A stretch of 64,000 bases of DNA, from contig OZ251223.1 of the NCBI GenBank assembly GCA_965240325.2, positions 1,860,001-1,924,000 on the forward strand, written 5' to 3'. Position 1 is the stretch's first letter; each line of letters begins with the position of its first letter. The translations under genes and the position numbers were made by a program. The notes beneath the pieces were generated by a model. The model was not told the origin of the DNA and ran no database searches. It saw nothing but the letters and a program-made list of their open reading frames with translations. Shown one piece after another: positions 18,501 to 53,820 of this stretch. This DNA is from Rebecca billardiae RCC1528. Lineage: Eukaryota > Protista > Haptophyta.

Positions 18501-18507
18501 GTGCTGA
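15502..18507 (+). CDS. Pro/Ser-rich (extensin-like) ORF with degenerate FG-GAP-like end; separate gene, relic or 5' exon of the giant gene
   Basis: 1001-aa ORF, also open in copy 2. It has a weak hydrophobic N-terminus (AILALLSLASGWYSL), ~570 aa of SP-rich sequence and QFGVGIAN..ALIAGTP. A candidate in-frame intron lies at 18211-18353. Confidence 0.5.
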   Translation: MAAHDVVHTASRLRATTAACPPAILALLSLASGWYSLPSRAVALPPPDGGERIFAHIPATVPGSCVESPGVERPAWNTTPSSVCPSPYASLSWHGHVASASPHHHATAGRPSLPSSSIIINHDKVWCPRGVDPVGARRATAEAPAAAPPPSQPPSPPPSPPRSLPPSLPPSPTSPSPSPPPAPPPAPPPSPPPSPPPSPPPPSPQPSPSPSSPPSPPPPSPPPSPPPSPPPLPPHSPPPNPPLSPPQSPPTSPPPPVSVPSPPPSPPPSPTPSPTPSPTPPSPPPPPPPSPPPSPPPSPPPNPPLPPRAASFPPPSPPSPPPSPPPSPPPSPPPPVGVPIPPPSPPPSPPPSPPPPVGVSSLPPSPPPSPPPSPPPSPPPPSPPPSPPPKPPPPPRAATFPPPPPPSPPPSLPPSPPPSPPPPVGVPSPPPSPPPSPQPSPPPSPRPPPSQPPSPPPSPQPSLRPPPSLRPPPPPPSTPPSPPPSSPPSPPPSPPPPLPPPSPLPSPPPSPPPLPPRAAPFPPPSPPSPPPPPSPPPSPPPSPPPSPLPSPPPMPPPPAPPSSPPSPPPSPPPSAPPPSPPPSPSPLPPPSPPPSRQPSPPPSPPPTPPPPSPTPCTPPSPPPSPPPSPPPSPPPTPPPPLVPVLPCPPPPSPLPSPPLPTPSPSPPPSPPPSPSPPPSPPARLPPSRPPPSPPLSPPPPSPPRMSPPSQPSSPPPPRPFVAAALERALFAGAADGVPAGVLDLGGLAVCSTGGAASTSTTPFISTVGARNGPAAATGGSAHVLVLANSSSLQDGATRMSTWPMITTLGAGGGSTQFGVGIANTPALLSGAESIQRARAVVALIAGTPYAEDGDSACVCLLLTRWLGRAGITVLALMFWRGSRCWRVLVSVVLLKWRSPSCRPVRPAPVCLQTCGAAVRRHGARRAIAPLLIRAPIPPHPRLASPHRHARRCGHRRERRPVADAASATRSRAFVPCQSSPRACFSCRSAPPTRASSATTPC

Positions 18508-21500
18508 CTGCTTCGGGAACCGTCGAAATGGGCTTAGGTTCCACATTCCTCGGGGATCTCGACGGCGACAGCGTTTCCGAGGCGCTGCTGTGCGATTGGG
18601 GAGATGCCGCCTACACTGGTGCATGCTACGTGTTCTTCCTCGATGCCGCTGGGGGCGTGGTCGGCTCGCCGCAGAAGATCTCAAAGTCGCAAGGCTGGAC
18701 GGGCGCGCCCCTCTCCACGGGCGGCCATTTCGGCGTGGACGCGCGTGGCCTCGGCGACCTCGATGGCGACGGAGTGCCCGACGCGATCGTCGGCGCCTCG
18801 AACGCCGATGAGGCGTACGTGCTCCTCCTCACCACAGCAGGCACGGTCAAGAGCCACACGCGCATCGCGAGCGGCGCAGGTGGCAAGGCTGCATTCACTG
18901 CCTCGTCCGGCTTCGGCTACGGCATAGGGGCGCTCGGTGATGTGGTGCGTGGGCCACCGCGCGCTCGCCCACGACGCGCTACTCCGGCGATCGCCTCGGA
19001 GCCTCTCGTCACGCGCTGATAGTTCACACCCCTGGTACACGTGCTCCCTGCGCCCGTGCGCAGGACGGCGACGGCGTCATCGACGTACTCGTGAGCGCGC
19101 ACTACGACAGCCAAGTGAATGCTGGCGCTGGGGCCGCATACGTGCTCTTCCTCAACACGGACGGCACGGTCAAGGCGGAGCAGAAGATTTTCGGCTCCGA
19201 CTTGGTCGGGAACGACAGGTTTGGCATGTCGTGCGCGGGCATCGGCGACTGGGACGCGGACGGCACGCCCGACGCCGCCGTGGGCTCGGCTGCTGACGCG
19301 AAGACGGGCGCGGTGTACATGCTGATGCTCAACTCAGACGGCAGCGTCAAGCAGGAGCACAAGCTGAGCGCGAGCAGCGGGGGAGTGACCGGCCTCGTCG
19401 CATCCAGCTACTTTGGCACGGGCGTCGCGTGCACCGGCGGCACCGTGCTCGACCTCAATGGCGACGGTGTCGGCGATCTTCTCGTCGGTGCCATGCATGA
19501 GTCTTCGAGGGCAGGCGCGGTGTACGTGCTGTACATGCAGCCAGACGGCACCGTGCTCAATCAGCACAAGATCAGCACGGCGGACACGCGCGGGCTCAGC
19601 GCGGGTATCCTCTCCGGCTCGCAATTTGGCCCGCGGATGGACGTGGACGACTACAATGGCGACGGCATGGCAGATGTCCTCATCGGCGCACCGGCCGCAA
19701 GTGGTGGTGGGCGAGTGCATCTCGCCACGCTCGTGCTGAACGAGCCAGCTCCGCCTCCGAGCCCGCCGGCGAGCCCACCGCCGCCCTCCCAGCCGCCCTC
19801 ACCACCGCCAACTCCACCGCCCTCGCCGCCGCCCAGCCCACCTCCGTCGCCCCCCCCCAGCCCGCCGCCGCCGAGCCCGCCGCCGCTCCGGCTGTACAGC
19901 ACCTTCCCGGCCGTGCGCGTGCTGGACGGCACTGAGCCTGGCGGCAGCGTGCAGGCTGGAGATGGGTTCGGCGCCAGCGTGGCGTTCATACCGGAGCTGG
20001 CCGCGGCGCAGGCTGGCGGCGGGCCCGTCGACCTGGCGCTCATCATCGGCGCACCTCGCGACGATGACACCGGCACGGACAACGGCGCGATCTACGTGGC
20101 GTACCTCAACGGCACCAGCCTCGTGGATGCGCCCGCGCAGCTGACCAAGGTGACGAGCACCCTGGCGAACGATCCGAGCTTAAATCGCTTCGGCGGTGAC
20201 GCTGTTCTGAGCGTGCCGGCGCTCGTGGGCCCCGGCGCCACGCCGCCAGCGGGCAGCGTGGCGGCCGTCCTAGCCCACTCGCAGGACGGCGTGACATTGG
20301 CTCAGCAAGGCTCGATCACGGTGACGTACTTCCGGGCGGACTTTACTATTGCCGGGCAGCACAAGCTCGAGCACAACACCAACGGCGCGCCGAGCCTCCA
20401 CGCACGCGCATTTTTCGGCAGAGCCATGGCGAACGTCGAGGAGTTGGCGGCTGCGTGTGGCAGCGTGGCGGTGCTCGCAGTCGGCTCCGCAGGCGCGGAG
20501 TGGGAAGGGCGTGTCGGCTCGATCTACATCATGTCGCTGGGGGCCGACGGCAAGGGCGACGGCACCCTGCTTCTGGAGATTGGCGGCAGCGGCGGGCTGA
20601 ACGGTGGGCCGGCGCTTCAGACGGGGGTAGGTACAGCCTCGGTGTTCGGTGCTGCTGTGGCGTCGTTGCCAGGGCTTGCTGCTGCGAGCGGCATCTCTGG
20701 CGCCGTCGCGGCCGTCGCCGTCGGCGACATATCCGATGACACGGGCGGCTCGAACCGCGGCGCGGTGTACATCCTCTTTCTGCGCGTCGATGGCACCGCC
20801 ATTTCTGGCTCGACCGTGCTGCTCGCGCACGGCGCCGATGGTGTGCCCGACCTTGCGGATGAGGACAAATTTGGGCGCACCCTTGCGTGCGTCGGCGACT
20901 TGAACGGCGACGGCGTGCCTGACCTCGCGGTCGGCGCTCCGGGCACAGACACAGCCACCCCTGCTGAGACGGGCACTGGCGCAGTGTACGTGCTGCTTCT
21001 CAACGCCGACGGCACCGCCAAGGGCGGCACCACCAGCATCATCATAGACAACGTTGATGGGGCGCCCAACCTCCCGGCGGGCGCAGGGTTTGGACTGGCT
21101 CTGGCTGCACTCGGTGACGTCGACGGTGATGGCTACGTGGAGCTCGCAGTGGGCGGTGGCATTGCCGGCGGCTCGTCAGCGGTCTACATTGTGCAGCTCA
21201 CGCCGCCGTCGCCGTCTCCTCCACCACCGTCGCCACCGTCGCCACCGCCGAGCCCGCCGCCATCTCCACCGCCCTCGCCGCCGCCCAGCCCGCCACCGCC
21301 GCCCTCACCACCCCCATCTCCACCGCCCTCGCCGCCGCCCAGCCCGCCACCACCCTCACCGCCACCCTCACCGCCACCCTCGCCGCCACCCAGTCCACCG
21401 TCGCCGCCCTCGCCACCACCGTCGCCGCCCTCGCCACCACCGTCGCCACCACCCAGCCCGCCGCTGCCGAGCCCACCACCTTCGCCGCCGCCGAGCCCAC

Positions 21501-31384: not shown

Positions 31385-31556
31385 CTGGGCGTGCCCTGCT
31401 GCACGCGCGTCAACACGACGGCGCCGTGGGCCGGGTATGCGCACGCGCACACCGCCGAGTGCGGCGGGGTGATTTGCGAATACTGTACCAGGTATGAAAC
31501 GCGTGGTGGGCTTGCCACATTCTGATGAAGATCTGCTCCCTCACCCGCTCCCGCGC

Positions 31557-34052: not shown

Positions 34053-35061
34053 TAATAATTCGATGTTACTGTCTGAACGGTGTCGTCAATTGTCAGGCAG
34101 CGCGCAGTCAAAGCCGCGCAAAGCGCGCACGCTGCGCTGCTGCCTGCTGCCATCACATGCATAGTCTGAGTCGTGCAAGTCCCTGCAGAAGTGGCCGTGC
34201 TCGGGGCCGGCCACTGCTGTTACGCTGTGAATCGACCACTCTTAGAACTGGCTGACTTAGACCGAGTGCCGTCACACTACTGGTCAACACACTGCGCAGC
34301 CGCAAGGGCCCTTGCCGCAGCGATGGTGCGAGTGCTGACCGGATGACCATCTTCAATCTGAACGCCCGTGGCCGCGTCTCGCGAGCCAGAACGCTCGCCG
34401 GCTTGCCTGCGCCCGCCGGCTCGAGCGCCCCGACAACACCGACGCACCAGCCCGCTCGGGCGAGCTCCCATCTATCCACTGAAACCGGTTCGTTCTCATG
34501 TGATACACAGATCTCGCGGTCAACCGTCCGGTATCTGAGCCGCTCGCCACCACTACTATAATGTCTGCAGCCTGAACCGTGTAATATTGTGTACGTTGAT
34601 GAATCAGAGTGAACTGCAGGCTTTATTAGATTAGAATCATGTTCCGCTTGATATCATTAGAGGCATAGAGCACAGCACGTTCTGGCTCAGCCTTTCAGTC
34701 ATTGATGAGCCTGATAAATATGAGCCTCGCGGTCATCGTGCAGACGTGCACTCATCGATCGATTATTTGTAGGTAAATGAGCGTTTGTGGCTGAGTTCGA
34801 ATATTACAGTTTACTATGATTTAACGTGCACACTTGGTTAAAGGCGTATGTGATGGGGGTGTGAAAAATACCGCCCCATGAATAATCTAGGGGTAAAGCG
34901 AAGTTTCATGACTATGCTGACGTATCCATACGTACCGGTACGCCTCTCAGTGACGAACGCTTCGCGCAGAGCATCTTCATCAGACTGCGAAGAACCAGCA
35001 CGCGAGTGTCTTCGTCTCGTCAAGCCCAACACGTCACACGCCACCAACGGCGCTCGCTGCG

Positions 35062-38000
35062 ATGGCGGCGCACGATGTGGTGCACACCGCCTCGCGTCTG
35101 CGCGCGACGACCGCGGCTTGCCCGCCTGCGATCCTCGCTCTTCTCTCGCTAGCAAGCGGCTGGTACTCGTTGCCGTCGCGTGCGGTTGCGTTACCTCCTC
35201 CAGATGGCGGCGAGCGCATCTTCGCTCACATCCCCGCCACCGTGCCGGGCTCGTGCGTCGAGTCACCTGGAGTTGAACGGCCGGCGTGGAACACAACGCC
35301 AAGCTCTGTCTGCCCGTCGCCTTACGCCTCACTCTCTTGGCACGGTCACGTCGCGAGCGCATCCCCTCATCATCACGCGACGGCCGGTCGCCCGTCGTTG
35401 CCGTCATCATCCATCATCATCAACCACGACAAGGTCTGGTGCCCACGGGGGGTGGACCCTGTGGGCGCTCGGCGTGCCACTGCAGAGGCCCCAGCCGCGG
35501 CGCCGCCACCCTCGCAGCCGCCGAGCCCGCCACCATCGCCGCCGCGGAGCCTGCCGCCGAGCCTGCCGCCCTCCCCGACATCCCCATCGCCGTCGCCCCC
35601 GCCAGCGCCGCCACCGGCGCCCCCGCCCTCGCCGCCACCGAGCCCGCCGCCCTCGCCGCCGCCGCCGAGCCCGCAGCCGTCGCCATCCCCGTCGTCGCCA
35701 CCATCGCCGCCTCCGCCGAGCCCGCCGCCCTCGCCACCACCCTCGCCGCCACCTTTGCCGCCGCACAGCCCGCCGCCAAACCCGCCACTGTCGCCGCCAC
35801 AGAGCCCGCCAACCTCGCCGCCGCCGCCCGTGAGCGTGCCGAGCCCGCCGCCGTCGCCACCGCCGTCGCCGACGCCATCGCCGACGCCATCGCCGACGCC
35901 GCCCTCGCCCCCGCCCCCGCCGCCGCCAAGCCCACCACCGTCACCACCGCCGAGCCCGCCGCCAAACCCGCCGCTACCGCCGCGCGCTGCGTCATTCCCG
36001 CCGCCATCGCCGCCATCGCCACCGCCGTCGCCGCCGCCGAGCCCACCGCCCTCGCCGCCGCCGCCCGTGGGTGTGCCGATCCCGCCGCCGTCGCCGCCGC
36101 CGTCACCACCGCCCTCGCCGCCGCCGAGCCCACCGCCCTCGCCGCCGCCGCCCGTGGGTGTGTCGAGCCTGCCGCCGTCGCCGCCGCCGTCACCACCGCC
36201 ATCACCGCCGCCCTCGCCGCCGCCGCCGTCGCCACCGCCCTCGCCGCCGCCAAAGCCGCCACCACCGCCGCGCGCTGCGACATTCCCACCGCCACCGCCG
36301 CCGTCGCCACCGCCGTCGCTGCCGCCGAGCCCGCCGCCCTCGCCGCCACCGCCCGTGGGTGTGCCGAGCCCGCCGCCGTCGCCGCCGCCGTCACCGCAGC
36401 CCTCGCCGCCGCCCTCGCCCCGGCCGCCTCCGTCCCAGCCGCCCTCGCCGCCGCCCTCGCCACAGCCGTCTCTGCGGCCACCGCCGTCTCTGCGGCCACC
36501 GCCGCCGCCACCGTCGACGCCACCGAGCCCACCTCCGAGCTTGCCGCCTTCGCCGCCACCCTCGCCGCCACCGCCGTTGCCGCCGCCGTCGCCGCTACCA
36601 AGCCCGCCGCCGTCACCCCTGCCGCTGCCGCCGCGCGCTGCGCCATTCCCGCCGCCATCGCCGCCATCGCCACCGCCGCCGCCGAGCCCGCCGCCGAGCT
36701 CGCCGCCGAGCCCGCCGCCGAGCCCGCTGCCGAGCCCGCCGCCCATGCCACCACCGCCCGCACCGCCGTCGTCGCCACCCTCACCGCCGCCGTCACCGCC
36801 GCCGAGCGCGCCGCCGCCGAGCCCGCCGCCAAGCCCTTCGCCTTTGCCGCCGCCGAGCCCACCGCCATCCAGGCAGCCGTCCCCGCCGCCGTCGCCGCCG
36901 CCGACCCCTCCGCCGCCGAGCCCAACGCCATGCACGCCGCCGTCCCCGCCGCCGTCTCCACCGCCGTCGCCGCCACCGTCGCCGCCGCCCACTCCGCCAC
37001 CCCCGCTGGTGCCGGTGTTGCCATGCCCACCGCCGCCGTCGCCGCTGCCGAGCCCACCGCTGCCGACCCCGTCACCGAGCCCGCCGCCGAGCCCACCACC
37101 GTCGCCGTCACCGCCACCGTCGCCACCAGCGAGGCTGCCGCCCAGCCGGCCGCCGCCCTCGCCGCCGCTCAGCCCGCCTCCACCGTCGCCACCGCGCATG
37201 TCGCCGCCCAGCCAGCCATCGTCACCGCCGCCTCCGAGGCCGTTCGTCGCGGCCGCACTCGAGCGCGCGCTCTTCGCCGGGGCAGCAGACGGCGTGCCCG
37301 CCGGCGTCCTGGACCTTGGCGGCTTGGCCGTCTGCTCGACGGGCGGCGCAGCGTCCACGTCCAGCACACCCTTCATCTCCACCGTGGGCGCGCGGAATGG
37401 TCCAGCTGCCGCGACCGGCGGATCGGTGCACGTCCTCGTGCTCGCAAACAGCAGCAGCCTGCAGGACGGCGCCACGCGCATGAGCACCTGGCCAATGATC
37501 ACGACGCTTGGCGCGGGCGGCGGGAGCACGCAGTTTGGCGTCGGGATTGCCAACACGCCCGCTCTCCTCTCGGGCGCGGAATCCATCCAGCGCGCCCGCG
37601 CTGTCGTCGCCCTCATCGCCGGCACGCCGTACGCAGAAGACGGCGACTCCGCGTGTGTTTGCCTTCTTCTCACCCGCTGGCTTGGTCGAGCCGGCATCAC
37701 TGTGCTGGCGCTGATGTTCTGGCGGGGCTCACGGTGCTGGCGCGTGCTGGTGAGCGTGGTCCTCCTCAAATGGCGCTCACCGTCCTGTCGACCGGTACGT
37801 CCAGCCCCTGTCTGTCTGCAGACCTGCGGCGCGGCCGTGCGGCGCCACGGCGCTCGTCGCGCAATCGCGCCCCTTCTCATCCGCGCGCCAATCCCACCTC
37901 ACCCTCGCCTCGCCTCGCCGCATCGACACGCGCGCAGGTGCGGCCACAGGCGCGAGCGCCGCCCGGTCGCGGACGCGGCATCAGCAACGCGCTCGCGGGC

Positions 38001-38091
38001 GTTCGTGCCATGCCAGTCCTCGCCGCGTGCCTGTTTCTCCTGCCGATCGGCGCCGCCAACCCGAGCCTCGTCCGCGACGACACCGTGCTGA
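35062..38091 (+). CDS. Pro/Ser-rich ORF, copy 2 (1009 aa)
   Basis: Near-identical to 15502-18507 with an in-frame 24-bp insertion. A candidate in-frame intron lies at 37795-37937. Confidence 0.5.
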   Translation: MAAHDVVHTASRLRATTAACPPAILALLSLASGWYSLPSRAVALPPPDGGERIFAHIPATVPGSCVESPGVERPAWNTTPSSVCPSPYASLSWHGHVASASPHHHATAGRPSLPSSSIIINHDKVWCPRGVDPVGARRATAEAPAAAPPPSQPPSPPPSPPRSLPPSLPPSPTSPSPSPPPAPPPAPPPSPPPSPPPSPPPPSPQPSPSPSSPPSPPPPSPPPSPPPSPPPLPPHSPPPNPPLSPPQSPPTSPPPPVSVPSPPPSPPPSPTPSPTPSPTPPSPPPPPPPSPPPSPPPSPPPNPPLPPRAASFPPPSPPSPPPSPPPSPPPSPPPPVGVPIPPPSPPPSPPPSPPPSPPPSPPPPVGVSSLPPSPPPSPPPSPPPSPPPPSPPPSPPPKPPPPPRAATFPPPPPPSPPPSLPPSPPPSPPPPVGVPSPPPSPPPSPQPSPPPSPRPPPSQPPSPPPSPQPSLRPPPSLRPPPPPPSTPPSPPPSLPPSPPPSPPPPLPPPSPLPSPPPSPLPLPPRAAPFPPPSPPSPPPPPSPPPSSPPSPPPSPLPSPPPMPPPPAPPSSPPSPPPSPPPSAPPPSPPPSPSPLPPPSPPPSRQPSPPPSPPPTPPPPSPTPCTPPSPPPSPPPSPPPSPPPTPPPPLVPVLPCPPPPSPLPSPPLPTPSPSPPPSPPPSPSPPPSPPARLPPSRPPPSPPLSPPPPSPPRMSPPSQPSSPPPPRPFVAAALERALFAGAADGVPAGVLDLGGLAVCSTGGAASTSSTPFISTVGARNGPAAATGGSVHVLVLANSSSLQDGATRMSTWPMITTLGAGGGSTQFGVGIANTPALLSGAESIQRARAVVALIAGTPYAEDGDSACVCLLLTRWLGRAGITVLALMFWRGSRCWRVLVSVVLLKWRSPSCRPVRPAPVCLQTCGAAVRRHGARRAIAPLLIRAPIPPHPRLASPHRHARRCGHRRERRPVADAASATRSRAFVPCQSSPRACFSCRSAPPTRASSATTPC

Positions 38092-41000
38092 CTGCTTCGG
38101 GAACCGTCCAAATCGGCCTCGGTTCCACATTCCTCGGGGATCTCGACGGCGACAGCGTTTCCGAGGCGCTGCTGTGCGATTGGGCAGATGCCGACGGTGG
38201 CGCCAACACTGGTGCATGCCACGTGTTCTTCCTCGATGCCGCTGGGGGCGTGGTCGGCTCGCCGCAGAAGATCTCAAAGTCGCAAGGCTGGACGGGCGCG
38301 CCCCTCTCCGCGGGCGGCCTTTTCGGCGCGGACGCGCGTGGCCTCGGCGACCTCGATGGCGACGGTGTGCCCGACGCGATCGTCAGCGCCGTCATCGCCG
38401 ATGAGGCGTACGTGCTCCTCCTCACCACAGCAGGCACGGTCAAGAGCCACACGCGCATCGCGAGCGGCGAAGGTGGCAAGGCTGCATTCACCGCATCGTC
38501 CAACTTTGGCCGCGGCATAGGCGTGCTCGGTGATGTGGTGCGTGGGCCACCGCGCGTTCGCCCACGACGCGCTACTCCGGCGATCGCCTCGGAGCCTCTC
38601 GTCACGCGCTGATAGTACACACCCCTGGTACACGTGCGCGCACGACTCCCTGCGCTCCTGCGCAGGACGGAGACGGCGTCATCGACGTACTCGTGAGCGC
38701 GAGCGCCGACAGCCAAGTGAATGCTGACGCTGGGGCCGCATACGTGCTCTTCCTCAACACGGACGGCGCCGTCAAGGCGGAGCAGAAGATTTTCGGCTCC
38801 GACTTGGTCGCATACGACAGGTTTGGCTTCTCGTGCGCGGGCATCGGCGACTGGGACGCGGACGGCACGCCCGACGCCGCCGTGGGCTCGCGTGCTGACG
38901 CGGATACGGGCGCGGTGTACATGCTGATGCTCAACTCAGACGGCAGCGTCAAGCAGGAGCACAAGCTGAGCGCGAGCAGCGGGGGAGTGACCGGCGTCGT
39001 CGCATCCAGCTTCTTTGGCACGGGCATCGCGTGCACCGGCGGCACCGTGCTCGACCTCAATGGCGACGGCGTCGGCGATCTTCTCGTCGGTGCCATGTAT
39101 GAGTCTTCGAGGGCAGGCGCGGTGTACGTGCTGTACATGCAGCCAGACGGCACCGTGCTCAATCAGCACAAGATCAGCACGGCGGACACGCGCGGGCTCA
39201 GCGCGGGTATCCTCTCCGGCTCGCAATTTGGCCGGCAGATGGACGTGGACGACTACAACGGCGACGGCATGGCAGATGTCCTCATCGGCGCACCGGCCGC
39301 GGGTAGTGGGCGAGTGCATCTCGCCACGCTCGTGCTGAACGAGCCAGCTCCGCCTCCGAGCCCGCCGCCGAGCCCGCCGCCTTCGCCGCCGCCGAGCCCG
39401 CCGCTGAGCCCGCCGCCGAGCCCGCCACCATCACCTCCGCCGCCGCCACCACCAAGCCCGCCGCCGAGCCCGCCGCCGAGCCTCGTCCACGACGACACCG
39501 TGCTGACTGCTTCGGGAACCGTCGAAATCGGCCTTGGTTCCACATTCCTCGGGGATCTCGACGGCGACAGCGTTTCCGAGGCGCTGCTGTGCGATTGGGG
39601 AGATGCCGCCTACACTGGTGCATGCTACGTGTTCTTCCTCGATGCCGCTGGGGCCGTGGTCGGCTCGCCGCAGAAGATCTCAAAGTCGCAAGGCTGGACG
39701 GGCGCGCCCCTCTCCACGGGCGGCCATTTCGGCGTGGACGCGCGTGGCCTCGGCGACCTCGATGGCGACGGAGTGCCCGACGCGATCGTCGGCGCCCCGA
39801 ACGCCGATGAGGCGTACGTGCTCCTCCTCACCACAGCAGGCACGGTCAAGAGCCACACGCGCATCGCGAGCGGCGCAGGTGGCAAGGCTGCATTCACTGC
39901 CTCGTCCGGCTTCGGCTACGGCATAGGGGTGCTCGGTGATGTGGTACGCGCGCCACCGCGCGTTCGCCCACGACGCGCTACTCCGGCGATCGCCTCGGAG
40001 CCTCTCGTCACGCGCTGATAGTACACACCCCTGGTACACGTGCTCCCTGCGCCCCTGCGCAGGACGGCGACGGCGTCATCGACGTACTCGTGAGCGCGCA
40101 CTACGACAGCCAAGTGAATGCTGGCGCTGGGGCCGCATACGTGCTCTTCCTCAACACGGACGGCACCGTCAAGGCGGAGCAGAAGATTTTCGGCTCCGAC
40201 TTGGTCGCGAACGACAGGTTTGGCATGTCGTGCGCGGGCATCGGCGACTGGGACGCGGACGGCACGCCCGACGCCGCCGTGGGCTCGGCTGCTGACGCGA
40301 AGACGGGCGCGGTGTACATGCTGATGCTCAACTCAGACGGCAGCGTCAAGCAGGAGCACAAGCTGAGCGCGAGCAGCGGGGGAGTGACCGGCCTCGTCGC
40401 ATCCAGCTACTTTGGCACGGGCGTCGCGTGCACCGGCGGCACCGTGCTCGACCTCAATGGCGACGGTGTCGGCGATCTTCTCGTCGGTGCCATGCATGAG
40501 TCTTCGAGGGCAGGCGCGGTGTACGTGCTGTACATGCAGTCAGACGGCACCGTGCTCAATCAGCACAAGATCAGCACGGCGGACACGCGCGGGCTCAGCG
40601 CGGGTATCCTCTCCGGCTCGAAATTTGGCCCGCGGATGGACGTGGACGACTACAATGGCGACGGCATGGCAGATGTCCTCATCGGCGCACCGGGCGCGAG
40701 TGGTGGGCGAGTGCATCTCGCCACGCTCGTGCTGAACGAGCCAGCTCCGCCTCCGAGCCCGCCGGCGAGCCCACCGCCGCCCTCCCAGCCGCCCTCACCA
40801 CCGCCAACTCCACCGCCCTCGCCGCCGCCCAGCCCGCCACCGCCACCCTCACCACCCCCATCTCCACCGCCCTCGCCGCCACCCAGCCCGCCACCGCCGC
40901 CCTCGCCACCGCCATCTCCACCGCCCTCGCCGCCGCCGGCGCCTCCGCCTCTGGTCGCGCAGTCTCTCTTGGAGCTCGACGGCGGCGGCTGGCAGCTCGT

Positions 41001-44000
41001 GCGCCGCGTCTCGCCGAGCGCGGGCACGTGGCATCCAGCGACGGACACCCTGGCGGGCACCGACGTGTACGGCACGCCCGGCGGCGCGACGGCCGACGTG
41101 ACCTTCTCGGTCGCCTTCCCTCCGTTCAACGAGTTCCTCTTTGCGACGGGCGACGGCACGAAGTGGATCATCTGCACGCGCGACGCGGCGATCGGCGACT
41201 ACTACAATAACGAGCTGAGGCCCATCCTGCTCGCGTCGAGCGGCGTCACACAGGCCCGGTGGCTCAACCGTGCGGGAAATCCGGAGGACCCGTGGATCTC
41301 GACGACCGATCATGTGCAGGCTCATCCTACTGGGGGCATACTGTACGGCGAGGACTCCATAACGCTTTACTTGTCCGCGCTGACTGCAAACAACGGCGCC
41401 AACGTGTACGTGCGCTTCCGCCCGGCCGAGGTGCTCGATGGCGGCGGCTGGCAGCTCGTGCGCCGCGTCTCGCCGAGCGCGGGCACGTGGCATCCAGCGA
41501 CGGACACCCTGGCGGGCACCGACGTGTACGGCACGCCCGGCGGCGCGACGGCCGACGTGACCTTCTCGGTCGCCTTCCCTCCGTTCAACGAGTTCCTCTT
41601 TGCGACGGGCGACGGCACGAAGTGGATCATCTGCACGCGCGACGCGGCGATCGGCGACTACTACAATAACGAGCTGAGACCCATCCTGCTCGCGTCGAGC
41701 GGCGTCACACAGGCCCGGTGGCTCAACCGTGCGGGAAATCCGGAGGACCCGTGGATCTCGACGACCGATCATGTGCAGGCTCATCCTACTGGGGGCATAC
41801 TGTACGGCGAGAACTCCATAACGCTTTACTTGTCCGCGCTGACTGCAAACAACGGCGCCAACGTGTACGTGCGCTTCCGCGAACCACCGCCGCCAAGCCC
41901 ACCACCATTGCCGCCACCTAGTCCACCGTCGTCACCTCCGCCGCCATCACCACCGAGCCCGCCACCGAGCCCGCCACCTAACCCTCCACCTTCGCCCCCA
42001 CCGAGCCCGCCGCCCAGCCCGCCGCCGAGCCCGCCACCCAAACCGCCGCCGAGCCCGCCGCCGAGCCCGCCGCCGAGCCCGCCGCCGAGCCCGCCACCTT
42101 CGCCGCCGCCGAGCCCGCCGCCGAGCCCGCCACCATCACCTCCGCCGCCGCCACCACCAAGCCCGCCGCCGAGCCCGCCGCCGAGCCCCCCGCCAAGCCC
42201 ACCACCTTCGCCGCCGCCAAGCCCGCCGCCAAGCCCGCCGCCAAGCCCACCACCTTCGCCCCCACCAAGCCCGCCGCCCAGCCCACCACCTTCGCCGCCG
42301 CCGAGCCCGCCGCCAAGCCCGCCACCATCACCTCCGCCGCCGCCACCACCAAGCCCGCCGCCGAGCCCGCCGCCGAGCCCCCCGCCAAGCCCACCACCTT
42401 CGCCGCCGCCAAGCCCGCCGCCGAGCCCGCCGCCAAGCCCGCCACCTTCGCCCCCACCAAGCCCGCCGCCCAGCCCACCACCTTCGCCGCCACCGAGCCC
42501 GCCACCCAGCCCGCCGCCGAGCCCGCCACCCAACCCGCCGCCGAGCCCGCCGCCAAGCCCGCCGCCGAGCCCGCCTCCCAACCCGCCGCCGAGCCCGCCG
42601 CCGAGCCCGCCGCCGAGCCCGCCACCTTCACCGCCGCCGCCACCACCCAGCCCGCCGCCGAGCCCGCCACCCAGCCCGCCGCCGAGCACGCCACCGAGCC
42701 CGCCACCGATCCCGCCGCCGAGCCCGCCACCCAGCCCGCCGCCGAGGCCGCCACCGAGCCCGCCGCCGAGCCCGCCGCCGAGCCCGCCGCCGAGCCCGCC
42801 GCCGAGCCCGCCGCCGAGCCCGCCGCCGAGCCCGCCGCCGAGCCCGCCGCCGAGCCCGCCGCCGAGCCCGCCGCCGAGCCCGCCGCCTTCGCCGCCGCCG
42901 AGCCCGCCGCCGAGCCCGCCACCATCACCTCCGCCGCCGCCACCACCAAGCCCGCCGCCGAGCCCGCCGCCGAGCCCGCCGCCAAGCCCGCCACCTTCGC
43001 CCCCACCAAGCCCGCCGCCCAGCCCACCACCTTCGCCGCCGCCGAGCCCGCCGCCAAGCCCGCCACCATCACCTCCGCCGCCGCCACCACCAAGCCCGCC
43101 GCCGAGCCCGCCGCCGAGCCCCCCGCCAAGCCCACCACCTTCGCCGCCGCCAAGCCCGCCGCCGAGCCCGCCGCCAAGCCCGCCACCTTCGCCCCCACCA
43201 AGCCCGCCGCCCAGCCCACCACCTTCGCCGCCACCGAGCCCGCCACCCAGCCCGCCGCCGAGCCCGCCACCCAACCCGCCGCCGAGCCCGCCGCCAAGCC
43301 CGCCGCCGAGCCCGCCTCCCAACCCGCCGCCGAGCCCGCCGCCGAGCCCGCCGCCGAGCCCGCCACCTTCACCGCCGCCGAGCCCGCCGCCGAGCCCGCC
43401 GCCAAGCCCGCCACCTTCGCCCCCACCAAGCCCGCCGCCCAGCCCACCACCTTCGCCGCCACCGAGCCCGCCACCCAGCCCGCCGCCGAGCCCGCCACCC
43501 AACCCGCCGCCGAGCCCGCCGCCAAGCCCGCCGCCGAGCCCGCCTCCCAACCCGCCGCCGAGCCCGCCGCCGAGCCCGCCGCCGAGCCCGCCACCTTCGC
43601 CGCCGCCGAGCCCGCCGCCGAGCCCGCCGCCAAGCCCGCCACCTTCGCCCCCACCAAGCCCGCCGCCCAGCCCACCACCTTCGCCGCCGCCGAGCCCGCC
43701 GCCGAGCCCGCCGCCGAGCCCGCCGCCGAGCCCGCCGCCGAGCCCCCCGCCAAGCCCACCACCTTCGCCGCCGCCAAGCCCGCCGCCAAGCCCGCCGCCA
43801 AGCCCGCCACCTTCGCCCCCACCAAGCCCGCCGCCCAGCCCACCGCCGAGCCCGCCGCCGAGCCCGCCACCCAGCCCGCCGCCGAGCCCGCCACCCAACC
43901 CGCCGCCAAGCCCGCCGCCAAGCCCGCCGCCGAGCCCGCCTCCCAACCCGCCGCCGAGCCCGCCGCCGAGCCCGCCGCCGAGCCCGCCGCCGAGCCCGCC

Positions 44001-47000
44001 GCCGAGCCCGCCGCCGAGCCCGCCGCCGAGCTCACCGCCGAGCCCGCCGCCGAGCCCGCCGCCGAGCCCGCCGCCGAGCCCGCCGCCGAGCCCGCCGCCA
44101 AAGCCGCCGCCGAGCCCGCCGCCGAGCCCGCCACCATCACCTCCGCCGCCGCCACCACCAAGCCCGCCGCCGAGCCCGCCGCCGAGCCTTCCGCCAAGCC
44201 CACCACCTTCGCCGCCGCCAAGCCCGCCGCCAAGCCTGCCGCCAAGCCCGCCACCTTCGCCCCCACCAAGCCCGCCTCCCAGCCCACCGCCGAGCCCGCC
44301 GCCGAGCCCGCCACCATCACCTCCGCCGCCACCACCACCAAGCCCGCCGCTGAGTCCGCCGCCGTCGCCACCACCCAGTCCACCACCCCCGTCGCCGAGC
44401 CCACCACCGCTGCCGCCTCCGCCGTCGCCGCCAGCCACCACGCCCTCCGCCCCACAGCCAGCGCCGCCGCCGCCGCCGCCACGCGCGATGGGCCGCGCGT
44501 ACGACGGCTACCTCGGGGACTGCATCGTCTTCGTCGACCTCGACGCCGACCTTCGACTCGACGCGGACGAGCCGTTCGCCGCCACCGACGCGAGCGGCGG
44601 CTTCCCGCTGCTCAACGCGGACGGGCGGTACGGCGCCGCGCCGTACGTGCTGCTCGCCGAGGCGGGCGGCGCGTGCGTCGACTCCGACTCCGGGCTGGAC
44701 GTGAAGATCCCGCTGATGGCGGGCGCGGGGCAGACGGCCATCTCGTCGATGACGACGGTCGTGCTCCTCGCCGCGCGCGCGCTCGAGGCGCGCGGCGTCG
44801 GCGCGCCCGCGCTCGCCCTGCTCTCCTCTGGCGGCGGCGCGCCCAGCGAGGCGGCCGCGTCCGACCTCGAGCTCGCGACCGAGCTCGCGGTCGGCGGCTG
44901 CCTGCAGCTGGACGTGGGCGCGGCCGGCGGGCTGGACGACCCGTTCCCCGAGCTGTGGCTCGGCGGCGAGCAGGCCGCGCCCAAGGCGGAGCTCGTGCAG
45001 CAGACGGCGGTGCTGCACGCCGTGACGACGCTCGTCGCGGGCGCGCTCGCCGCGTACGACTCTGGCGACTCGGCGCAGGCCGCGTCCGCGGAGGCGATGC
45101 GCCCGCACGCGGTGAGCGTGCAGCAGGCGATGGCCACGCTGATGGCGGACGCGCTCGAGGCCGGGCTGCGCGCCGCGGCGCTCAATCTGACCAGCGGCGC
45201 GCCTCTCGGTGGGGCCAGTACCGGCGCTGCGCCGCCCAACGTGTCGTGCGCGCTCGACCTCGGCTCGGAGGCGACGGTGGAGGCGGTCGTGTCGCGCGCG
45301 AGCGCGCAGCAGCTCGGCGCGAGCGTGCAGCCGCCGGCCGAGACGGTGGCGCCGCTCTCGTCGCTGGTCTCCTCCACCGTGCGCGCGACGCGGTCGTTCG
45401 TGCAGCCCGCCGCCGCCGCGGTGCGCGCCTCGCCCAACGCCACGGCCAACGCCACCGCCGCCGCGTCGGCCTACGTGCAGCGCGTGAGCGCGGGCGCTCG
45501 GCTCGTGCAGTCGACGCTGCTCGCGATGGTCGCGCCGCCGCTCGCGACGCTGGGGCGCGAGATGCGCGCGCCGAACGCGACGTCTCCGCCGCTCGCTGGC
45601 GCGAACACAAGCAACGCCACGGCGCTCAACGCAACCGACGGCACGCCTGCCGCCGGCGGCGGCGCGGGCTCGTCCGCGCTGCTCGCCTCGACGGTGGCCG
45701 CTCTGGAGGAGATTGCAATCTCGGTGGGCGTGGCCGATGGCACTACCGGCACGCCCGCCGCGCTCGAGAGCGAGCTGGGCAGCGTGGCGCCAGCTGGCTG
45801 CCCGCCGACGGCGTGGTGCGCGGCGCTCGCCGCCGCGCTGCACCCGCCGCGGCTGCTGCGCGCGCGCTTCAACGGCCAGGCGACGGCGCTGCGGCTGCAG
45901 TTTGACGCGCAGCCGACCGACCGCGCGGGCATGGCGGCGGGCGTGCAGCCGTGCAGCATTGTGCTCGACGATGCGACGCTCGCGCGCGTGCGCGGCGCGG
46001 CGGAGGCGGAGCCGGGCTGCTTCTGGGAGGACGACAGCACGCTCGTCGTGCAGCTGGACAGCCGCACCGCCCTGCGCCCCGGCGATGCCGTGGGCATCCG
46101 CGCCGACGCGCTGCGGCCGCGCGGCAGCGCGCAGCCATGCCCGCACGAGCTGTGCGCGCCCGCGGCGCAGGTGACCATCCCGGCACAGCCCGCGGCGGCG
46201 TGCGTCGGCGGATGCCCGGTGCCCGTGGCGGTGCTCGCGGGGCCGACGACGGTGTCGTCCTGCCCGTATCAGCCCATTCTGCTGCGCTCGACCGGCTCGT
46301 CCGCCGGCGGCGTCGCTGCGCCCGAGTACTCCTGGTCCGTCAACGCGACGGGCGCGGCAGCGCTCGCGCCCGCCGCCGCGGCGGCGCTCGTCTCTCGAGT
46401 GGCGGCGGCGCGCGGGCCGAGCCTGAGCGTGGAGCTGCCGCCGGGCGCTGAGTTTGCCTTCGAGCTCCGGCTGGTCTCGTTCCTCGGCTTCGCCTCCGCG
46501 CCCGCCGCCGCCACCGTCGTCCGCACCGCCTCGCTCTCGCCGACGGTCGCGCTGCTCGGCCCGGCGGTGCAGACGGTGGCGCGGCCGGGCGCAAAGCACG
46601 TGCTGCTCGCGCGCGCCGAGCCTGCGTCGTGCTGGCCGGCGGCGACGTCGCGTCAGATTCAGTTTCAGTGGGCTGTGCGCGCCGCGCAGCCCGCCGACGG
46701 CTCCGCCGGCCCCACGCCGCTGCCGCCCTTTGACGCGGCGACGGCGGGCACGCGCGCGCAGCTCGAGTTGGCTCCCTTCTCGCTGCGTGCCGGCTACCGG
46801 TATGAGCTCGAGCTCACGGCGACGATGGCGGCGGACGCGGCGGCGAGCGCGAGCGCGCGTGTGGAGCTGCTCGTGGGCACGGCGCCCGTGAGCGCCGCCA
46901 TCGGCTCGGGCGACCGCACCGCCTCGCTCGAGGCGGACGCCATCGTGTTTGACGGCTCGGCCTCTGCCGACGGCAACACGGGCGGCTCAGACGGCCTTGC

Positions 47001-50000
47001 CTTCGCGTGGACGGTCGTGAGCGCGGGCGGCGGCAGCGACGAGCCGCCGCCGCCGCCGCTCGCGTCAGTGTCCGGCACGGCTTCGAATGCGTCGTACTTC
47101 TCGCTCGCGCCCGCTCAGCTCGGCCTGGCCGCGGGCGAGTACGACGTCCGCCTCGCCGTCTCGAGTGCGGACGGGCGCGCGGCCACGGCCAGCGTGCGGC
47201 TCACGCTCGTGCCGGGCGCTGTGCCGCAGCTTGCGCTGGCGCTCGGTGGGGACGGGCGCGGGAAGTACAACGAGGCTTGGGACTCGCCCGGCGAGTCCAT
47301 CTCGGTGCTCGCGACGCCGGACATCGGCGTGCCCGCGGCCGAGGCCGCTGACGAGCCCGCCCTCGCGTACCGCTGGAGCGTCGCCGAGATGGTCGACGGC
47401 GTGGCCGCGCCCGCGCGCCGCGCCGACGGCCGCCCGCTCGACCTCGCAGACGCGCGCACGGCCACGACGACGGGCGACGCGAAGCGCGCTCTCGTCTTCC
47501 GGCCGGGCGTGCTCGTCCCCGGGGTGACGTACGCGCTCACGCTCGAGGTGACGGGCGCCGCGAATCCCGCCGTCTCGCGCCTCGTTGTCGTGATGAATCG
47601 CCCTCCGTATGGCGGCACCCTCGTGGTGTCGCCCGCCGCGGCGCGCGCGTTCGAAAACGTCGCGCTGATCGCGGCCGGCTGGACGGACGACGAGGCTGAG
47701 GATCTGCCGCTGCGGTACGCGTTCGGGTACGTGCGGGCAGGCACAGCGGCCCAGCAGCAGCTCACAGCCGCGTCCTCGCTCGAGCCCACCGCCTCCGCCG
47801 TGCTGCCCGAGGGCGAGCACAACGCGACGCTCGCCGTGACCGACCAGTTTGGCGGCGTGGCGAGGGCGAGCGCGCGCGCGCGCGTGCTGCCGCTGCCGCC
47901 GGCCAACCGCACAGCGGAGGCGGCGGACAGGCAGGTGAGCGCGGCGCAGAGCGCGCTCGACGAGGGCGATGTCAACCTTGCGCTGCAGCTCGTCGTCGCC
48001 GTCGCAGATGCCATGCTGCCCGCCGTCACCGCGGCCAACGCCACCGACGCGCGCGCCCTCACCGCCAGCCTGTTGTCACTCACAGCAGCGCTCGCAGCCG
48101 CTGGCGTGGCTGAGCTCGACGGCGGGCGGGCGGCGTTGTCGAATGCGGTCGGCTCGGCGCTCGCCGAGCCACGCGCGCTCTCCGCCGACTCGCAGCTCGA
48201 CGGCCTCGCGCAGCTCGCCGCCCTCGTCGAGGGCGCGCCGTCGGCAGTCGGCATTGACGAGACGACCTCTGTCAATGTCGGCCGCGGCATCGACTCGGTC
48301 CTCGTCGCAGCCGCTCCCGGCGGCGGCGACGGCGGCACCCCGCCGAGCGCGGGGGCAGCGCTGGCGATAGACGAGGCAGTGCGGGGCTCCGCACGCACGC
48401 TCTCCGACGGGCTGCTCCTCGGTGTGCTCCCGGGCGAGCGCGCGCGCGACTTTGTCGGCGAGCGGCTGAGCCTGAGCTCGGCGCGAGAGTTTGCCGCCTC
48501 GGTCGAGAACTCGACCGTCGATGTGGCCGGCGGGCGCGGCACGGTGAGCCTACCGGTGGGCGTGCTCGGCGGCAGCTCGGTGAGCGGCGACGCGGTGGAT
48601 GTGCAGCTCGTGCTGCTCCAGCGCAACGTGCACGACGACCCGCGAGACCGCCCGGGCGACCTTGCCGTCGCGCGCGGCGGCGGCGGCATCCAGTACGGCC
48701 TGGGCGAGCAGCGCGCGCTCTACTCGCCGCTCTTCGGCGTGACGCTCGTGGACGCGCGGTCGCGCGCGCCGTTGTGGATTCGCGGGCTGTCGACGTCGAT
48801 CACCATCACCATCCCGCTGCTCGGCGTGGACGAGCTGCCGTCGCTCGGCGACTCGCCGCGCGCCACCGGCGTGTGCGCGGACGCGAGCGAGTGCGCGCCG
48901 CCCGGCGACGAGCCGCGCGGCAGCTGCATCGCGCCGCCGGAAGTCAACGCCTCCGCTGGCGACAGCGGAGGCGGCGGCGGCGGTGCATGCGAGTGCAACG
49001 CGGGCTTTGCGGGGGCGGCGTGCGACGAGCTGCAGACCTGCCACTTCTGGAACGAGACCTCGCGCCGCTGGTCCTCCGAAGGCTGCCGCGCCGTCGGCGT
49101 GAGCGCGGGCGCGCTCGTGTGCGCGTGCGACCACCTCACCGACTTCGTCGCCCTCGGCGTCGCGATCGAGAGCGTCGCGGCGGGCGAGGACTCCGGCGAG
49201 GTCGCGGTGAACCGAATCGAGACTGAGGGCTTCGAGGGCGAGTCGCCGAGCGGCGTGGTCCAGGAGGTGGCCGGGCGGCTTGCGGCCAACTTTTGGGGCG
49301 TGGTCGTCGTGTGCGTCGTGCTCGGGCCGATGCTGCTGCTGCTCCTCGTCGCGCACCGCGTCGACCTGCAGATCGAGCGGCAGCCGTCGGTGCCGCAGTG
49401 GAAGCTGCGCGCGGCAAAGTCCATCTGGTGGCGCGCGGGGGCGCACATGCTCACGCGCTCGACGCTCACCTCGTGGCTCACGCGGCTGCCGGGCGACCCG
49501 GTGAGCGCGAAGATGCGCGTGCTGACGCTGATGAACGTGACGCTGGTCGAGCTCTTCGTGATGGCGCTCTTCATCGGCCAGGCGGAGGACCTCTCCGCGA
49601 CGCAGCTGATCGTGAGCGTGGCGGTGGGCATCGCGTCGGGCTACCCGTACGAGGCCTTCTTCCTCGAGCGGCTGCTCGAGTGGAGCGTGCGCAGGCGCGG
49701 GCTGCTCGAGGAGCGGCCGGACGGCGTCGACCCGGCGGACGCGCACACGCGCCGCGCCGCGCTGCGCATGGCGGAGGTGATCGAGCCGACGAGCGCAGCG
49801 AGCGGCGCGGCCGCCGCGGCGGCGGCAGCACGGGGCGCGGTGCAGGGCACGGCCCACGCCGCGGCGCACGACGCGCACCTCGACCGGCACCGCGCCCACC
49901 AGCCCAAGGGCAGCGAGACAGACAGTAGCGAGCCCGTCGCGCACAAGGTGCGGTACGTGCGGCCTCAGAACGTCAAGCTGATCGAGGCGGACGCGACGGC

Positions 50001-51513
50001 GGCCGACGAGACGGCGGGGGAGGAGACCATTGGCACGCCCTCGCCTCCGCCCTCGCCGAGCGCGCAGCCCTCACCCATGCCTCTGCCCCGGCCCCAGTCC
50101 CTCGGAGTGATGGCCTACCTCGGGGGCGGCCCCACTGAGGCGCACCCGCCGTCGCCCAGCCCGCGGCCCTTGCCCTTGCCTCGGCCGCAGTCGCTCGGCG
50201 GGATGGCCCACCTCGGCGGCGCCTCCGCCGCGTCGCCGGTCGTGCCGCGCCGCGCGGCGGATTCGGGCGCGCGTGACAGTAGTGGCGCGGGGGCGAAGCC
50301 GCGCGCGCGCGTGCGCCGCGCGAGCTCGGTGATTGATCTGGGCCTTGACCTGGGCCTGACGATGGTCAGCGACGCCGACCTGCCGCCGGGCGCGATGGCG
50401 GTGAGCATGCCCGACCAGGCGCTCATCTCCATCCCGACGAACGAGGGGCAGATCGTCGGCTTCTTCGTCGCGCGCACGTGGCACGAGACCGTGATCAAGA
50501 CGGTGATCCCTCCGCCCAACAGGCCGTCCATCCTCTCCGAGATGGCGGGCGTGCGGCTCCACTTTGACCGCGGGCAGCACGAGCTGCTGGAGGAGGCGCA
50601 CCGCACGCTCGACTTCCACGACGGCGTGCCCGACGTGCGCTTCGTGCAGGCCGAGCGCGTGTACCGCCGCAACCCGATCCCTGCGGAAGAGGCGCAGCGC
50701 ACGTACGGCATCGTCAGCATGCGCACACACGCGCGGCGCGGCTCAATGACGGCCGGAGGTGCGGCCAACAGGGCGCGTCGGGGCAGCCTGACGGCCGGCC
50801 TGGGGCTCGGAGGAGACAAGGAGAGCGTGCCGATGGTCAAGATGGTGCAGGTCGTGCACCTCACCAGCCCGTACATCGACGGCCGCCAGATCCTGCCCGC
50901 CGACGTGATCGCGCAGTCCAACGTGGCCGCTGTCGCCGCCCTCGAGGCGTACAACCTGGGGTCCGCCCACGCGCACAGCCACCGCCACCGCCGCGGGCAC
51001 GGGCGCGCCGCGGACGCCGAGCTCGGCAAGGCCGAAGCAGCGGCCGCGGGGATGGGTGCAGCGGGCGCGAGCGCGCACGCCGAGCCGGTGACACGGCATC
51101 GCGTGCACGAGCGCGTGCGCCTCACGCGCTCCGAGCTGGAGCACGCGCAGTGGTGGTCGAACAAGCCGAAGAGGTGGAAGCTGCGGACGGCGACCACGGT
51201 GAACGTGCTCCTCATCTGCGCCGTGGCGTGCCTGCTGCTCGCCTTCTCCATCCTCGGCGGCGCGGGCGTGCGTGACCCCGACCTGTGGCGGCAGGAGATC
51301 CTGGTCGCGTGGCTCATCGAGCTCGGGTTCAAGCTCGCGCTCATCGAGCCGGGCGTCGTGCTCGCGCGGCTGATCATCGACCTCTTTGTGAGGACGTGCG
51401 TGCCAGAGGCGTACCGCGACTGGGCGATCGAGGTGTTCGTCGAGCCGTTCCTCCACCAGCTGCGCAAGCCGAAGAAGCTCCTCAGAGATATCCTCGGCTT
51501 CGACTTGTGCTAG
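38010..51513 (+). CDS. Giant polycystin-1/REJ-like GPS receptor, paralogue 2; join(38010..38537,38666..39943,40063..51513), 4418 aa
   Basis: Same signal peptide as paralogue 1. Two homologous phase-0 GT-AG introns. Variant propeller A', propeller A, two tandem fibrinogen-like modules (459-bp period), (SPPP)n, REJ, EGF, GPS (49039-49146) and 5 TM. Confidence 0.9.
41884..44481 (+). repeat. Coding 12-bp minisatellite encoding (SPPP)n, ~865 aa
   Basis: As in paralogue 1, but with a different block arrangement, including SPPPPPPP units. Confidence 0.95.
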
Positions 51514-53790: not shown

Positions 53791-53820
53791 TCTCAGCACT
53801 GATTTGCTCATCGCACCTCT

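Follow-up and report, generated by a model that had tools for sequence, protein, structure and literature searches.

The propeller heads of integrin alpha subunits are formed by FG-GAP repeats (PF01839) with DxDGDG calcium hairpins; they have seven blades and stand on thigh and calf leg domains that lead to a single GFFKR-bearing membrane helix, and the alpha subunit forms a heterodimer with a beta subunit. In the structural work on integrins by Springer in 1997 and by Xiong et al. in 2001, the calcium hairpins reportedly lie on the lower face of the propeller, and ligands touch the 4-1 and 2-3 loops of its upper face. FG-GAP/VCBS proteins from bacteria and environmental sequences, mostly Actinomycetota and Planctomycetota metagenomes, are the closest database relatives of the head described here (41-50% identity), but they have neither a REJ-GPS base nor an SPPP rod, and none is near enough to serve as an outgroup. 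A third group of described relatives, which includes Polycystin-1, PKDREJ and suREJ, shares with our locus a REJ domain and a GPS motif (CDHLTDF) ahead of the membrane segments; a PLAT domain and an 11-helix or channel-like membrane part are further marks of that group. Positive selection on the extracellular parts of REJ-GPS proteins has been reported in sea urchin, primates and the brown alga Ectocarpus (PMC4700764).

The window analysed here, 64,000 nucleotides of contig OZ251223.1 from the haptophyte Rebecca billardiae, contains two tandem copies of a giant surface-receptor gene of about 20 kb apiece. The encoded architecture comprises a probable signal peptide, one or more FG-GAP heads, linkers and a rod of Ser-Pro-Pro-Pro, a REJ domain, a GPS motif and putative membrane helices. 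In copy 1, Pfam matched REJ over 440 of 452 profile positions (PF02010, E=1.9e-30) and GPS with E=8.1e-10 (PF01825); CACDHLTDF, which includes the GPS sequence HL/T, occurs in both gene copies. Pfam scans of 19064-21400, 40063-42099 and 24821-31381 returned, besides FG-GAP families, REJ and GPS, one weak sub-threshold match to WD40, and in these regions neither PLAT nor a channel domain was matched at E<=0.01. Like integrins, the receptor combines FG-GAP repeats with DxDGDG calcium hairpins in its head; unlike them, it has six blades, is only 14-20% identical in sequence, and yielded no Pfam match to the leg domains (Integrin_alpha2), its base being REJ-GPS. With six blades and this base, it is not an integrin. 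From the Polycystin-1/REJ family it differs in having FG-GAP propellers as heads, mounted on a Ser-Pro rod, in place of lectin or PKD domains. The features to which we refer below are, in window coordinates:

18477..19756, + strand: propeller A1 of gene copy 1 (exons 18477-18944 and 19064-19756, intron 18945-19063)
36907..38108, + strand: upstream flank plus the head's initial 48 nt, near-identical to copy 1
38010..38060, + strand: probable start codon and, read from a hydrophobic stretch, probable signal peptide (MPVLAACLFLLPIGAA) in gene copy 2; same sequence as copy 1 at 18426
38061..38537, + strand: exon-1 part of propeller A', with blades 1 and 2 and the beginning of blade 3 (alignment, AlphaFold2)
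38538..38665, + strand: phase-0 intron of A', GTGCGT...GCGCAG, 128 nt, GT..AG, with in-frame TGA and TAG
38666..39355, + strand: exon-2 part of propeller A', from the remainder of blade 3 through blade 6 (Pfam, AlphaFold2, Foldseek)
39356..39475, + strand: Ser-Pro linker L' from A' to A2 (three-way alignment, translation), meeting A2 via the shared words CCGAGCC
39476..40752, + strand: propeller A2 (exons 39476-39943 and 40063-40752, intron 39944-40062)
40753..51513, + strand: remainder of gene copy 2 (linker, two W-rich modules, long SPPP rod, REJ, GPS, membrane part), from the open reading frame
about 46654-48000, + strand: REJ of copy 2, from the Pfam position in copy 1 moved by an ungapped offset of 20129
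about 49036-49146, + strand: GPS of copy 2, placed by the same offset

An initial annotation had compared the first head of copy 2, A', with a single propeller A. A' does differ from A, but A exists twice, as A1 in copy 1 and as A2 directly behind A'. A1 and A2 are 98.2% identical over 1370 nt, and A' and A2 are 92-93% identical. A2 begins its linker in the same L1-type manner as A1, and the linker behind A' differs; on this alignment A2 is the true counterpart of A1, and A' is an extra, and probably the older, head module. At neutral sites (silent and intronic) the A' branch carries 11 changes against about 6 and 3 on the other two. The span earlier given to A', 38058-39340 with about 425 residues, includes the 128-nt intron with its in-frame stops, and the spliced head has about 389 codons.

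All three heads have six FG/calcium-loop repeats between signal peptide and linker. A' is intact: its frame is free of stops, the length of each of its two exonic indels is divisible by three, and its splice sites are retained; splicing regenerates a perfect GDVDGDGVID calcium loop. Intactness alone says little, because an open frame would survive 48 random substitutions in 34% of cases. Its intron has an A'-specific insertion of 9 nt and only 1 A'-specific substitution, compared with 3 each in A1 and A2. In Pfam searches the exon-2 part of A' matched FG-GAP with 69.9 bits (PF01839, cut-off 22.1, E=1.4e-19); the exon-1 part gave no FG-GAP match, and that of A1 scored 21.0 bits, just below the cut-off.

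The assembler might have joined, within the repetitive Ser-Pro DNA, either two gene copies or two alleles of the same head, and the junctions do lie in low-complexity SPPP-coding DNA. However, the differences between the heads are in-frame substitutions, unlike error-type indels, the junction is unique and keeps the reading frame, the assembly consists of just 41 contigs, and tandem head modules are also carried by other genes of the R. billardiae genome. We therefore consider an assembly artefact very improbable.

The exons of A' contain 46 substitutions specific to it, compared with 6 in A1 and 5 in A2 (relative-rate test, p about 1e-8), in a comparison of three sequences whose long branch is unrooted. 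They replace 29 residues over about 386 codons, to which an insertion of 3 residues is added, in agreement with the approximately 30 amino-acid changes first noticed; relative to A1 alone, A' has 32 replacements and is one residue shorter near the C-terminus. All eight motif changes initially listed are present: WGDAAY>WADADGGAN, TGGHFGV>AGGLFGA, GASN>SAVI, SGFGY>SNFGR, AHYD>ASAD, GNDRFGM>AYDRFGF, AADAK>RADAD and FGPR>FGRQ. A2 itself varies at two of them, with GAPN where A1 has GASN and ANDRFGM where A1 has GNDRFGM. The DxDGDG loops are indeed unchanged in protein sequence, with no replacements and 4 silent changes across the six loops, and the flanking DNA is near-identical as noted, with 2 mismatches in the upstream 1200 nt compared with 57 in the next 1200 nt. 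Divergence in this flank is no more than a tenth of that at silent sites of the gene body, which between copies 1 and 2 has dS 0.0207, dN 0.0067 and omega 0.32; the flank was therefore recently homogenised or recently shared.

Two protein searches for an outgroup, with the exon-2 piece and with the long open reading frame (region 1-225), found no relative above 50% identity. The next paralogues of A' in the assembly, 41-51% identical, polarise few sites and are mostly uninformative at the loop sites. Judging from them, the A side may be where some of the differences (R235, D239) arose.

To place the changes on the fold, we used structure prediction and searches on the separate exons and on the open stretch 38666-39943. 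AlphaFold2 modelled the exon-1 part with a mean pLDDT of 85.6 and strands at 18-26, 35-40, 51-56, 69-71, 88-96, 105-110, 115-121 and 127-134, and the exon-2 part with pLDDT 93-97 across residues 1-210. These strands are consistent with six blades of four strands each, and the best Foldseek matches of the predicted fold in the PDB were the propellers of alphaV, alpha5, alphaIIb and alpha4 (E about 1e-12).

On this model the changes are concentrated where the initial annotation had seen them, around the FG and post-GA loops; from the AlphaFold2 secondary structure, these correspond to the 4-1 loops before strand A and the 2-3 loops after strand B. Of the 29 replacements, 21 fall in these top loops, which make up 31-33% of the codons; in a partition drawn after the changes had been seen, the enrichment has p=1e-5 initially and p=5e-6 after revision with AlphaFold2. 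None of the 29 is in a calcium loop (p=0.013). In the predicted structure the changed loops lie opposite the calcium hairpins, as expected for the upper face that they had been said to form, and they are equivalent to the 4-1/2-3 loops with which integrins contact ligands. By this analogy, the top face of A' is a putative ligand-binding face.

Across the whole domain, comparison of A' with A by the NG86 method gave dN 0.049-0.050 and dS 0.038-0.045, and omega for A' was 0.88-1.3, thus about 1, compared with 0.32 for the gene body. The ratio of replacement to silent changes was 36:10 in A' and 31:36 in the gene body (Fisher p=0.0009). Outside the top loops, omega in A' was 0.33-0.51, matching the gene body, which together with the sparing of the calcium loops leads us to reject pure neutral decay; as judged from these rates, the scaffold of strands, calcium hairpins and bottom loops is still under purifying selection. 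In the top loops, omega was 2.5 when the silent rate was shared domain-wide, and omega=1 was rejected (LRT 7.4, p=0.0065). The earlier proposal of positive selection is moderately supported by this, but computed on the loops' own silent sites omega was 1.9-2.0, an excess over 1 that is not significant (p=0.15-0.17).

The substitutions in A' are also clustered. Adjacent changes no more than 3 nt apart number 15 where 5.6 are expected (p=5e-5), and 8 codons changed more than once where 1.9 are expected; one example is 38492-38522, with 8 changes in 31 nt, 4 of them silent. The gene body likewise has an excess of adjacent changes (9 of 66 gaps of 3 nt or less), and the apparent omega is therefore inflated by multi-nucleotide mutation. 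Transitions and transversions on the A' branch (23:23) do not differ significantly from those in the gene body (40:27).

This clustering bears on relaxed constraint, under which an intact A2 behind A' would make the binding loops of A' dispensable, so that they drift neutrally and multi-nucleotide mutation lifts omega above 1. The scaffold would then be kept, since misfolding of a domain in so large a secreted protein would do harm. The whole-domain omega around 1, the test on the loops' own silent sites and the excess of multi-hit codons and adjacent changes are all in line with this, as are the loss of the exon-1 Pfam match and the replacement G109S, which alters a GAP-motif glycine conserved in at least 90% of homologues. 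Against it stands the rejection of omega=1 under the shared-rate model. Moreover, when multi-hit codons are collapsed into single events, 23 top codons have changed compared with 9.3 expected, still about 2.5 times the neutral expectation (conditional binomial p 0.005). Many of the changes are radical, exchanging aromatic or charged residues, and A' has kept its frame, its splice sites and its calcium loops. Relaxed constraint is thus a possible but somewhat unlikely account, and positive selection is moderately supported as the preferable reading over relaxation combined with multi-nucleotide mutation.

Tight patches that contain silent changes, such as 38492-38522, could also have been copied in by short-tract gene conversion or templated patch repair from a donor that has since been lost, was left unassembled or lies on the other haplotype. 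In searches of the 72-Mb assembly (41 contigs) with the full A' DNA and at the protein level, however, we found no further copy above about 50% protein identity. Neither did the six largest patches (24-27 nt, at most 3 mismatches, whole genome) have a match in an FG-GAP context, and whole-genome searches with two A' pieces of 71-72 nt gave chance matches only. One match, 22 nt exact and spanning the 9-nt insertion, is at C37:136822; this site and C29:196798 are in Ala/Asp/Gly/Pro-rich low-complexity coding DNA, unrelated to the heads, and C19:1359319 is outside any FG-GAP context; we take all three as chance hits. In addition, the four silent changes in the calcium loops are isolated in otherwise unaltered sequence, as expected from ordinary point mutation. 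With no donor in the assembly and no plausible source for the largest patches, the conversion from a third paralogue that had been suggested is unsupported, and we consider templated replacement in general quite unlikely.

The arrangement of a near-identical A2 next to the changed A' further recalls the template and variable repeats of diversity-generating retroelements, in which a variable repeat undergoes programmed hypermutation, and the per-base rate of change is highest at A (6.7%, compared with 2.8-4.2% at the other bases). Yet the substitutions arise from all four bases (A 13, C 10, G 15, T 8), by which adenine-directed mutagenesis is rejected; furthermore, indels are present, the changes cover 1.2 kb across an intron, and no reverse transcriptase is linked to the locus. 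Such a mechanism is hardly credible here. The description of the loops as hypervariable was likewise an overstatement, since what we see is a single diverged copy and no variable system has been demonstrated.

The reading we prefer is that the outer head A' was selected for an altered binding surface after duplication, yielding a receptor with two different heads, to which we assign a probability of roughly 0.5. Gene copy 2 carries two heads in series, an outer A' and an inner A2, with A' as a 1415-nt extra module that arose by tandem duplication of the head, presumably mediated by short matches between the linker and the first codons of the head. Purifying selection would have held the scaffold of A', its top loops would have gained amino-acid replacements about 2.5 times faster than silent changes, and selection would have remodelled the top face into a changed putative ligand surface. 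Both the order of these events and selection rather than relaxation as their driver are what we infer from the substitution pattern. Since both head introns are in phase 0 and the internal exon 38666-39943 has 1278 nt, a multiple of three, it is also conceivable that skipping of this exon could produce a predicted hybrid single head.

That binding surfaces diverge after domain duplication is well known, as is the fast evolution of REJ proteins in their extracellular parts, and A' looks like an ordinary example of a new surface gained by a duplicated binding domain; it departs from the REJ family in that the accelerated part is the propeller and not the REJ region. A much broader reading, which we regard as unlikely, is that recurrent positive selection diversifies the top loops on the outermost heads of a family of roughly 100 rod-mounted REJ-GPS receptors in R. 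billardiae. The family would then serve as a repertoire for recognising mates, prey, viruses or kin, in which A' and A2 would be a freshly made receptor of two specificities. What the comparison provides is a residue-level map of which face of the propeller head may vary and which stays fixed, and the variable face is where one would first look for ligand binding in this large family of giant, rod-borne REJ-GPS receptors, as yet uncharacterised. Should the loop changes be adaptive, A' and A2 constitute a natural experiment, two heads 92-93% identical that differ almost only on one face, and the pair could be used to find the ligands of these receptors.

The sequence analyzed lies on contig 3 of a very GC-rich, 72-Mb eukaryotic assembly of 41 contigs. 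A segment of about 20 kb forms a tandem pair in it (copy 1, ~14613-31829; copy 2, ~34166-51944; window positions here and below), and each copy carries one giant gene with the following parts, in order:

Part 1: N-terminus, short and hydrophobic, probably a signal peptide
Part 2: FG-GAP propeller
Part 3: Ser-Pro-Pro-Pro linkers and a rod of >1000 residues
Part 4: REJ domain (E=1.9e-30)
Part 5: GPS motif (E=8.1e-10; sequence CDHLTDF)
Part 6: hydrophobic segments following the GPS motif

The propeller is interrupted by a phase-0 GT..AG intron carrying in-frame stops, and a perfect GDVDGDGVID calcium loop is regained once this intron is spliced out. The propeller head is found in three copies:

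18477-19756: head A1, gene copy 1
38061-39355: head A', the outer head of gene copy 2
39476-40752: head A2, gene copy 2, separated from A' by a 120-nt linker

The two genes also differ by entire modules (19885-21332 versus 40753-41900), with all breakpoints located within SPPP-coding linkers. A second FG-GAP propeller (B), unrelated to A, is present in gene copy 1 and absent from gene copy 2, and a W-rich module occurs twice in gene copy 2. Located 5' of each head is a long Ser-Pro-rich open frame (15502-17900 and 35062-37480) that has a hydrophobic N-terminus of its own and ends in a short FG-GAP-like tail; it is either a separate gene within the duplicated unit or upstream exons. G+C is 0.47-0.53 at 52000-54000 and 56000-58000, and 0.65-0.84 in the remaining window.

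A' has the appearance of a real, intact extra head module, and we consider an assembly artefact very improbable. On contig C10 of the same assembly (2815001-2835000, open frame 8662-19998 of these 20 kb), a giant LRR and FG-GAP protein contains three successive six-blade propeller modules of 429 residues each, every one flanked by SPPP linkers and all three seemingly identical as proteins. Tandem head modules are therefore common in this genome and usually undiverged, unlike A' and A2. The internal exon 38666-39943 of gene copy 2 is 1278 nt long, a multiple of three, and both adjoining head introns are in phase 0; as judged from the sequence, skipping it would fuse A' blades 1-3a in frame to A2 blades 3b-6.

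Over 1158 aligned exon sites, 46 substitutions are specific to A', 6 to A1 and 5 to A2, with 2 three-way differences (relative-rate test, p ~1e-8). Codons were counted by script on exon codons from the window, and because the intron is in phase 0, no codon is affected by counting exons separately. The A' protein has 29 specific replacements and a DGG insertion, which include all motif changes listed in the initial annotation; the length of ~425 aa given there counts the intron, and the spliced head has ~389 codons. Its description of the DxDGDG loops as unchanged holds for the protein, with 0 replacements and 4 silent changes across the six calcium loops, as does that of the upstream flank as near-identical (2 differences from copy 1 in the 1200 nt before 38108, 57 in the next 1200 nt).

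For searches and structure prediction the head exons were taken separately, unjoined; one natural uninterrupted open stretch, 38666-39943 (A' exon 2, linker and A2 exon 1), was folded as such. AlphaFold2 yielded confident four-stranded blades, with pLDDT 93-97 across the A' part of this stretch and a mean of 85.6 for A' exon 1. Among PDB structures, integrin alpha propellers match best (E ~1e-12, TM 0.45-0.50). The DxDGDG hairpin connects strands A and B in every blade, so the 4-1 loops (preceding strand A, pre-FG) and 2-3 loops (following strand B, post-GA) lie on the opposite face, which in integrin structures is the upper, ligand-contacting one. Of the 29 replacements, 21 fall in these top loops, which comprise 31-33% of codons (p=1e-5; p=5e-6 with AlphaFold-revised boundaries), so that the proposed concentration around them is borne out. 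Five further replacements are in strand A, four of them among its first three residues; G109S replaces the glycine of the GAP motif, one replacement is in strand C and one in a bottom loop. The residue two past the Phe of FG is changed in four of six blades.

Selection was analyzed on three sequences (A1, A2, A'), with a top-loop partition that follows a structural rule and was set after the data had been seen.

Selection measures for the gene body and head A'
Gene bodies of copies 1 and 2 compared over 6399 ungapped nt (NG86): dS 0.0207, dN 0.0067, omega 0.32
A' against either A1 or A2 (NG86): dS 0.038-0.045, dN 0.049-0.050, omega 1.1-1.3
Entire head (maximum likelihood, GY94): omega 0.88-1.0; p=0.0003-0.0016 vs 0.32; not different from 1
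Non-top codons (GY94): omega 0.36-0.51, equal to gene body
Top loops with a silent rate of their own (GY94): omega 1.9-2.0, p=0.15-0.17 vs 1
Top loops, single domain-wide silent rate (GY94): omega_top 2.5, omega_rest 0.33-0.43, LRT 7.4, p=0.0065

The A' scaffold thus evolves like the remaining gene, and its top-face loops are remodelled. Positive selection, as initially proposed, is supported in the top loops when one silent rate is shared across the domain, the usual assumption of site models, but falls short of significance when the loops are given their own. With changed codons counted once, 23 top codons compare with 9.3 expected from silent and intron sites (conditional binomial p 0.005). 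We give a probability of about 0.5 to adaptive change of the putative binding surface following head duplication.

The substitutions in A' are clumped, with 15 neighbour distances ≤3 nt (5.6 expected, p=5e-5) and 8 codons changed more than once (1.9 expected). Adjacent changes are likewise over-represented in the gene body (24701-31100 vs 44830-51229): among 66 neighbour distances, 9 are ≤3 nt where we estimate ~2, suggesting that multi-nucleotide mutation or micro-conversion is frequent in this genome. Multi-nucleotide mutation, which inflates omega-type tests of selection, is therefore at work here, and its combination with relaxed constraint on the loops of a redundant head is a possible, if more doubtful, source of the pattern.

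Conversion from a third paralogue, the other initial proposal, found no support. With the full A' DNA as query, only A', A1 and A2 were found as close copies in the assembly; other DNA matches were short (35-257 nt, 67-95%) and mostly at conserved calcium-loop codons, and the next protein-level paralogues had 41-51% identity. Searches with the six largest patches of A'-specific changes, including the 9-nt insertion, at ≤3 mismatches yielded only self matches and chance matches in unrelated DNA, and no FG-GAP donor. A 22-nt exact match spanning the insertion and encoding the same ADADGGA (contig C37, 136822-136845, within the examined stretch 135800-137900) lies in Ala/Asp/Gly/Glu-rich low-complexity coding DNA, not FG-GAP; it is probably due to chance, and a templated insertion is conceivable. 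Conversion from an unseen donor is accordingly unlikely. Substitutions start from each of A, C, G and T, by which adenine-directed mutagenesis is ruled out; programmed hypermutation has a very small probability.

A1 and A2 share 98.2% identity over 1370 nt, and the linker that follows them begins with ~90 nt common to both, unlike the linker after A'. The counterpart of A1 is A2, not A', and this accounts for the sharp divergence boundary. Copy 2 aligns to copy 1 at ~99% throughout once a unit of 1415 nt, made up of the A' body, the linker and a repeat of the head start, is counted as an insertion; the junction words CCGAGCC occur both in the linker and in the first codons of the head. On neutral sites, silent and intron taken together, 11 changes fall on the A' branch, ~6 on A1 and 3 on A2; with the intron considered by itself, A' shows the lowest number (1 vs 3 and 3). 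These small numbers are more in keeping with a somewhat older duplicate, either lost from copy 1 or left distinct while conversion kept A1 and A2 similar, than with an abrupt burst of change in a young A'. Flank divergence between the copies (0.17-0.4%) is far below the body dS of 0.021 and very uneven along the 20 kb, stretches of 800-1200 nt with 0-2 differences adjoining others with 1-2.7% (36907-38108, 15523-16422, 24300-25100). The two tandem genes are, on this evidence, still being homogenised, and recent conversion tracts are suggested.

The protein may work in the manner of integrin-type propeller heads, but it is not an integrin: its propeller has six blades, leg domains are missing and the base is of the REJ-GPS type. 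Fast-changing extracellular parts have already been reported for REJ-GPS proteins in sea urchin, primates and Ectocarpus (PMC4700764), and the pattern in A' is therefore of a known type, in a gene family that appears to be undescribed.
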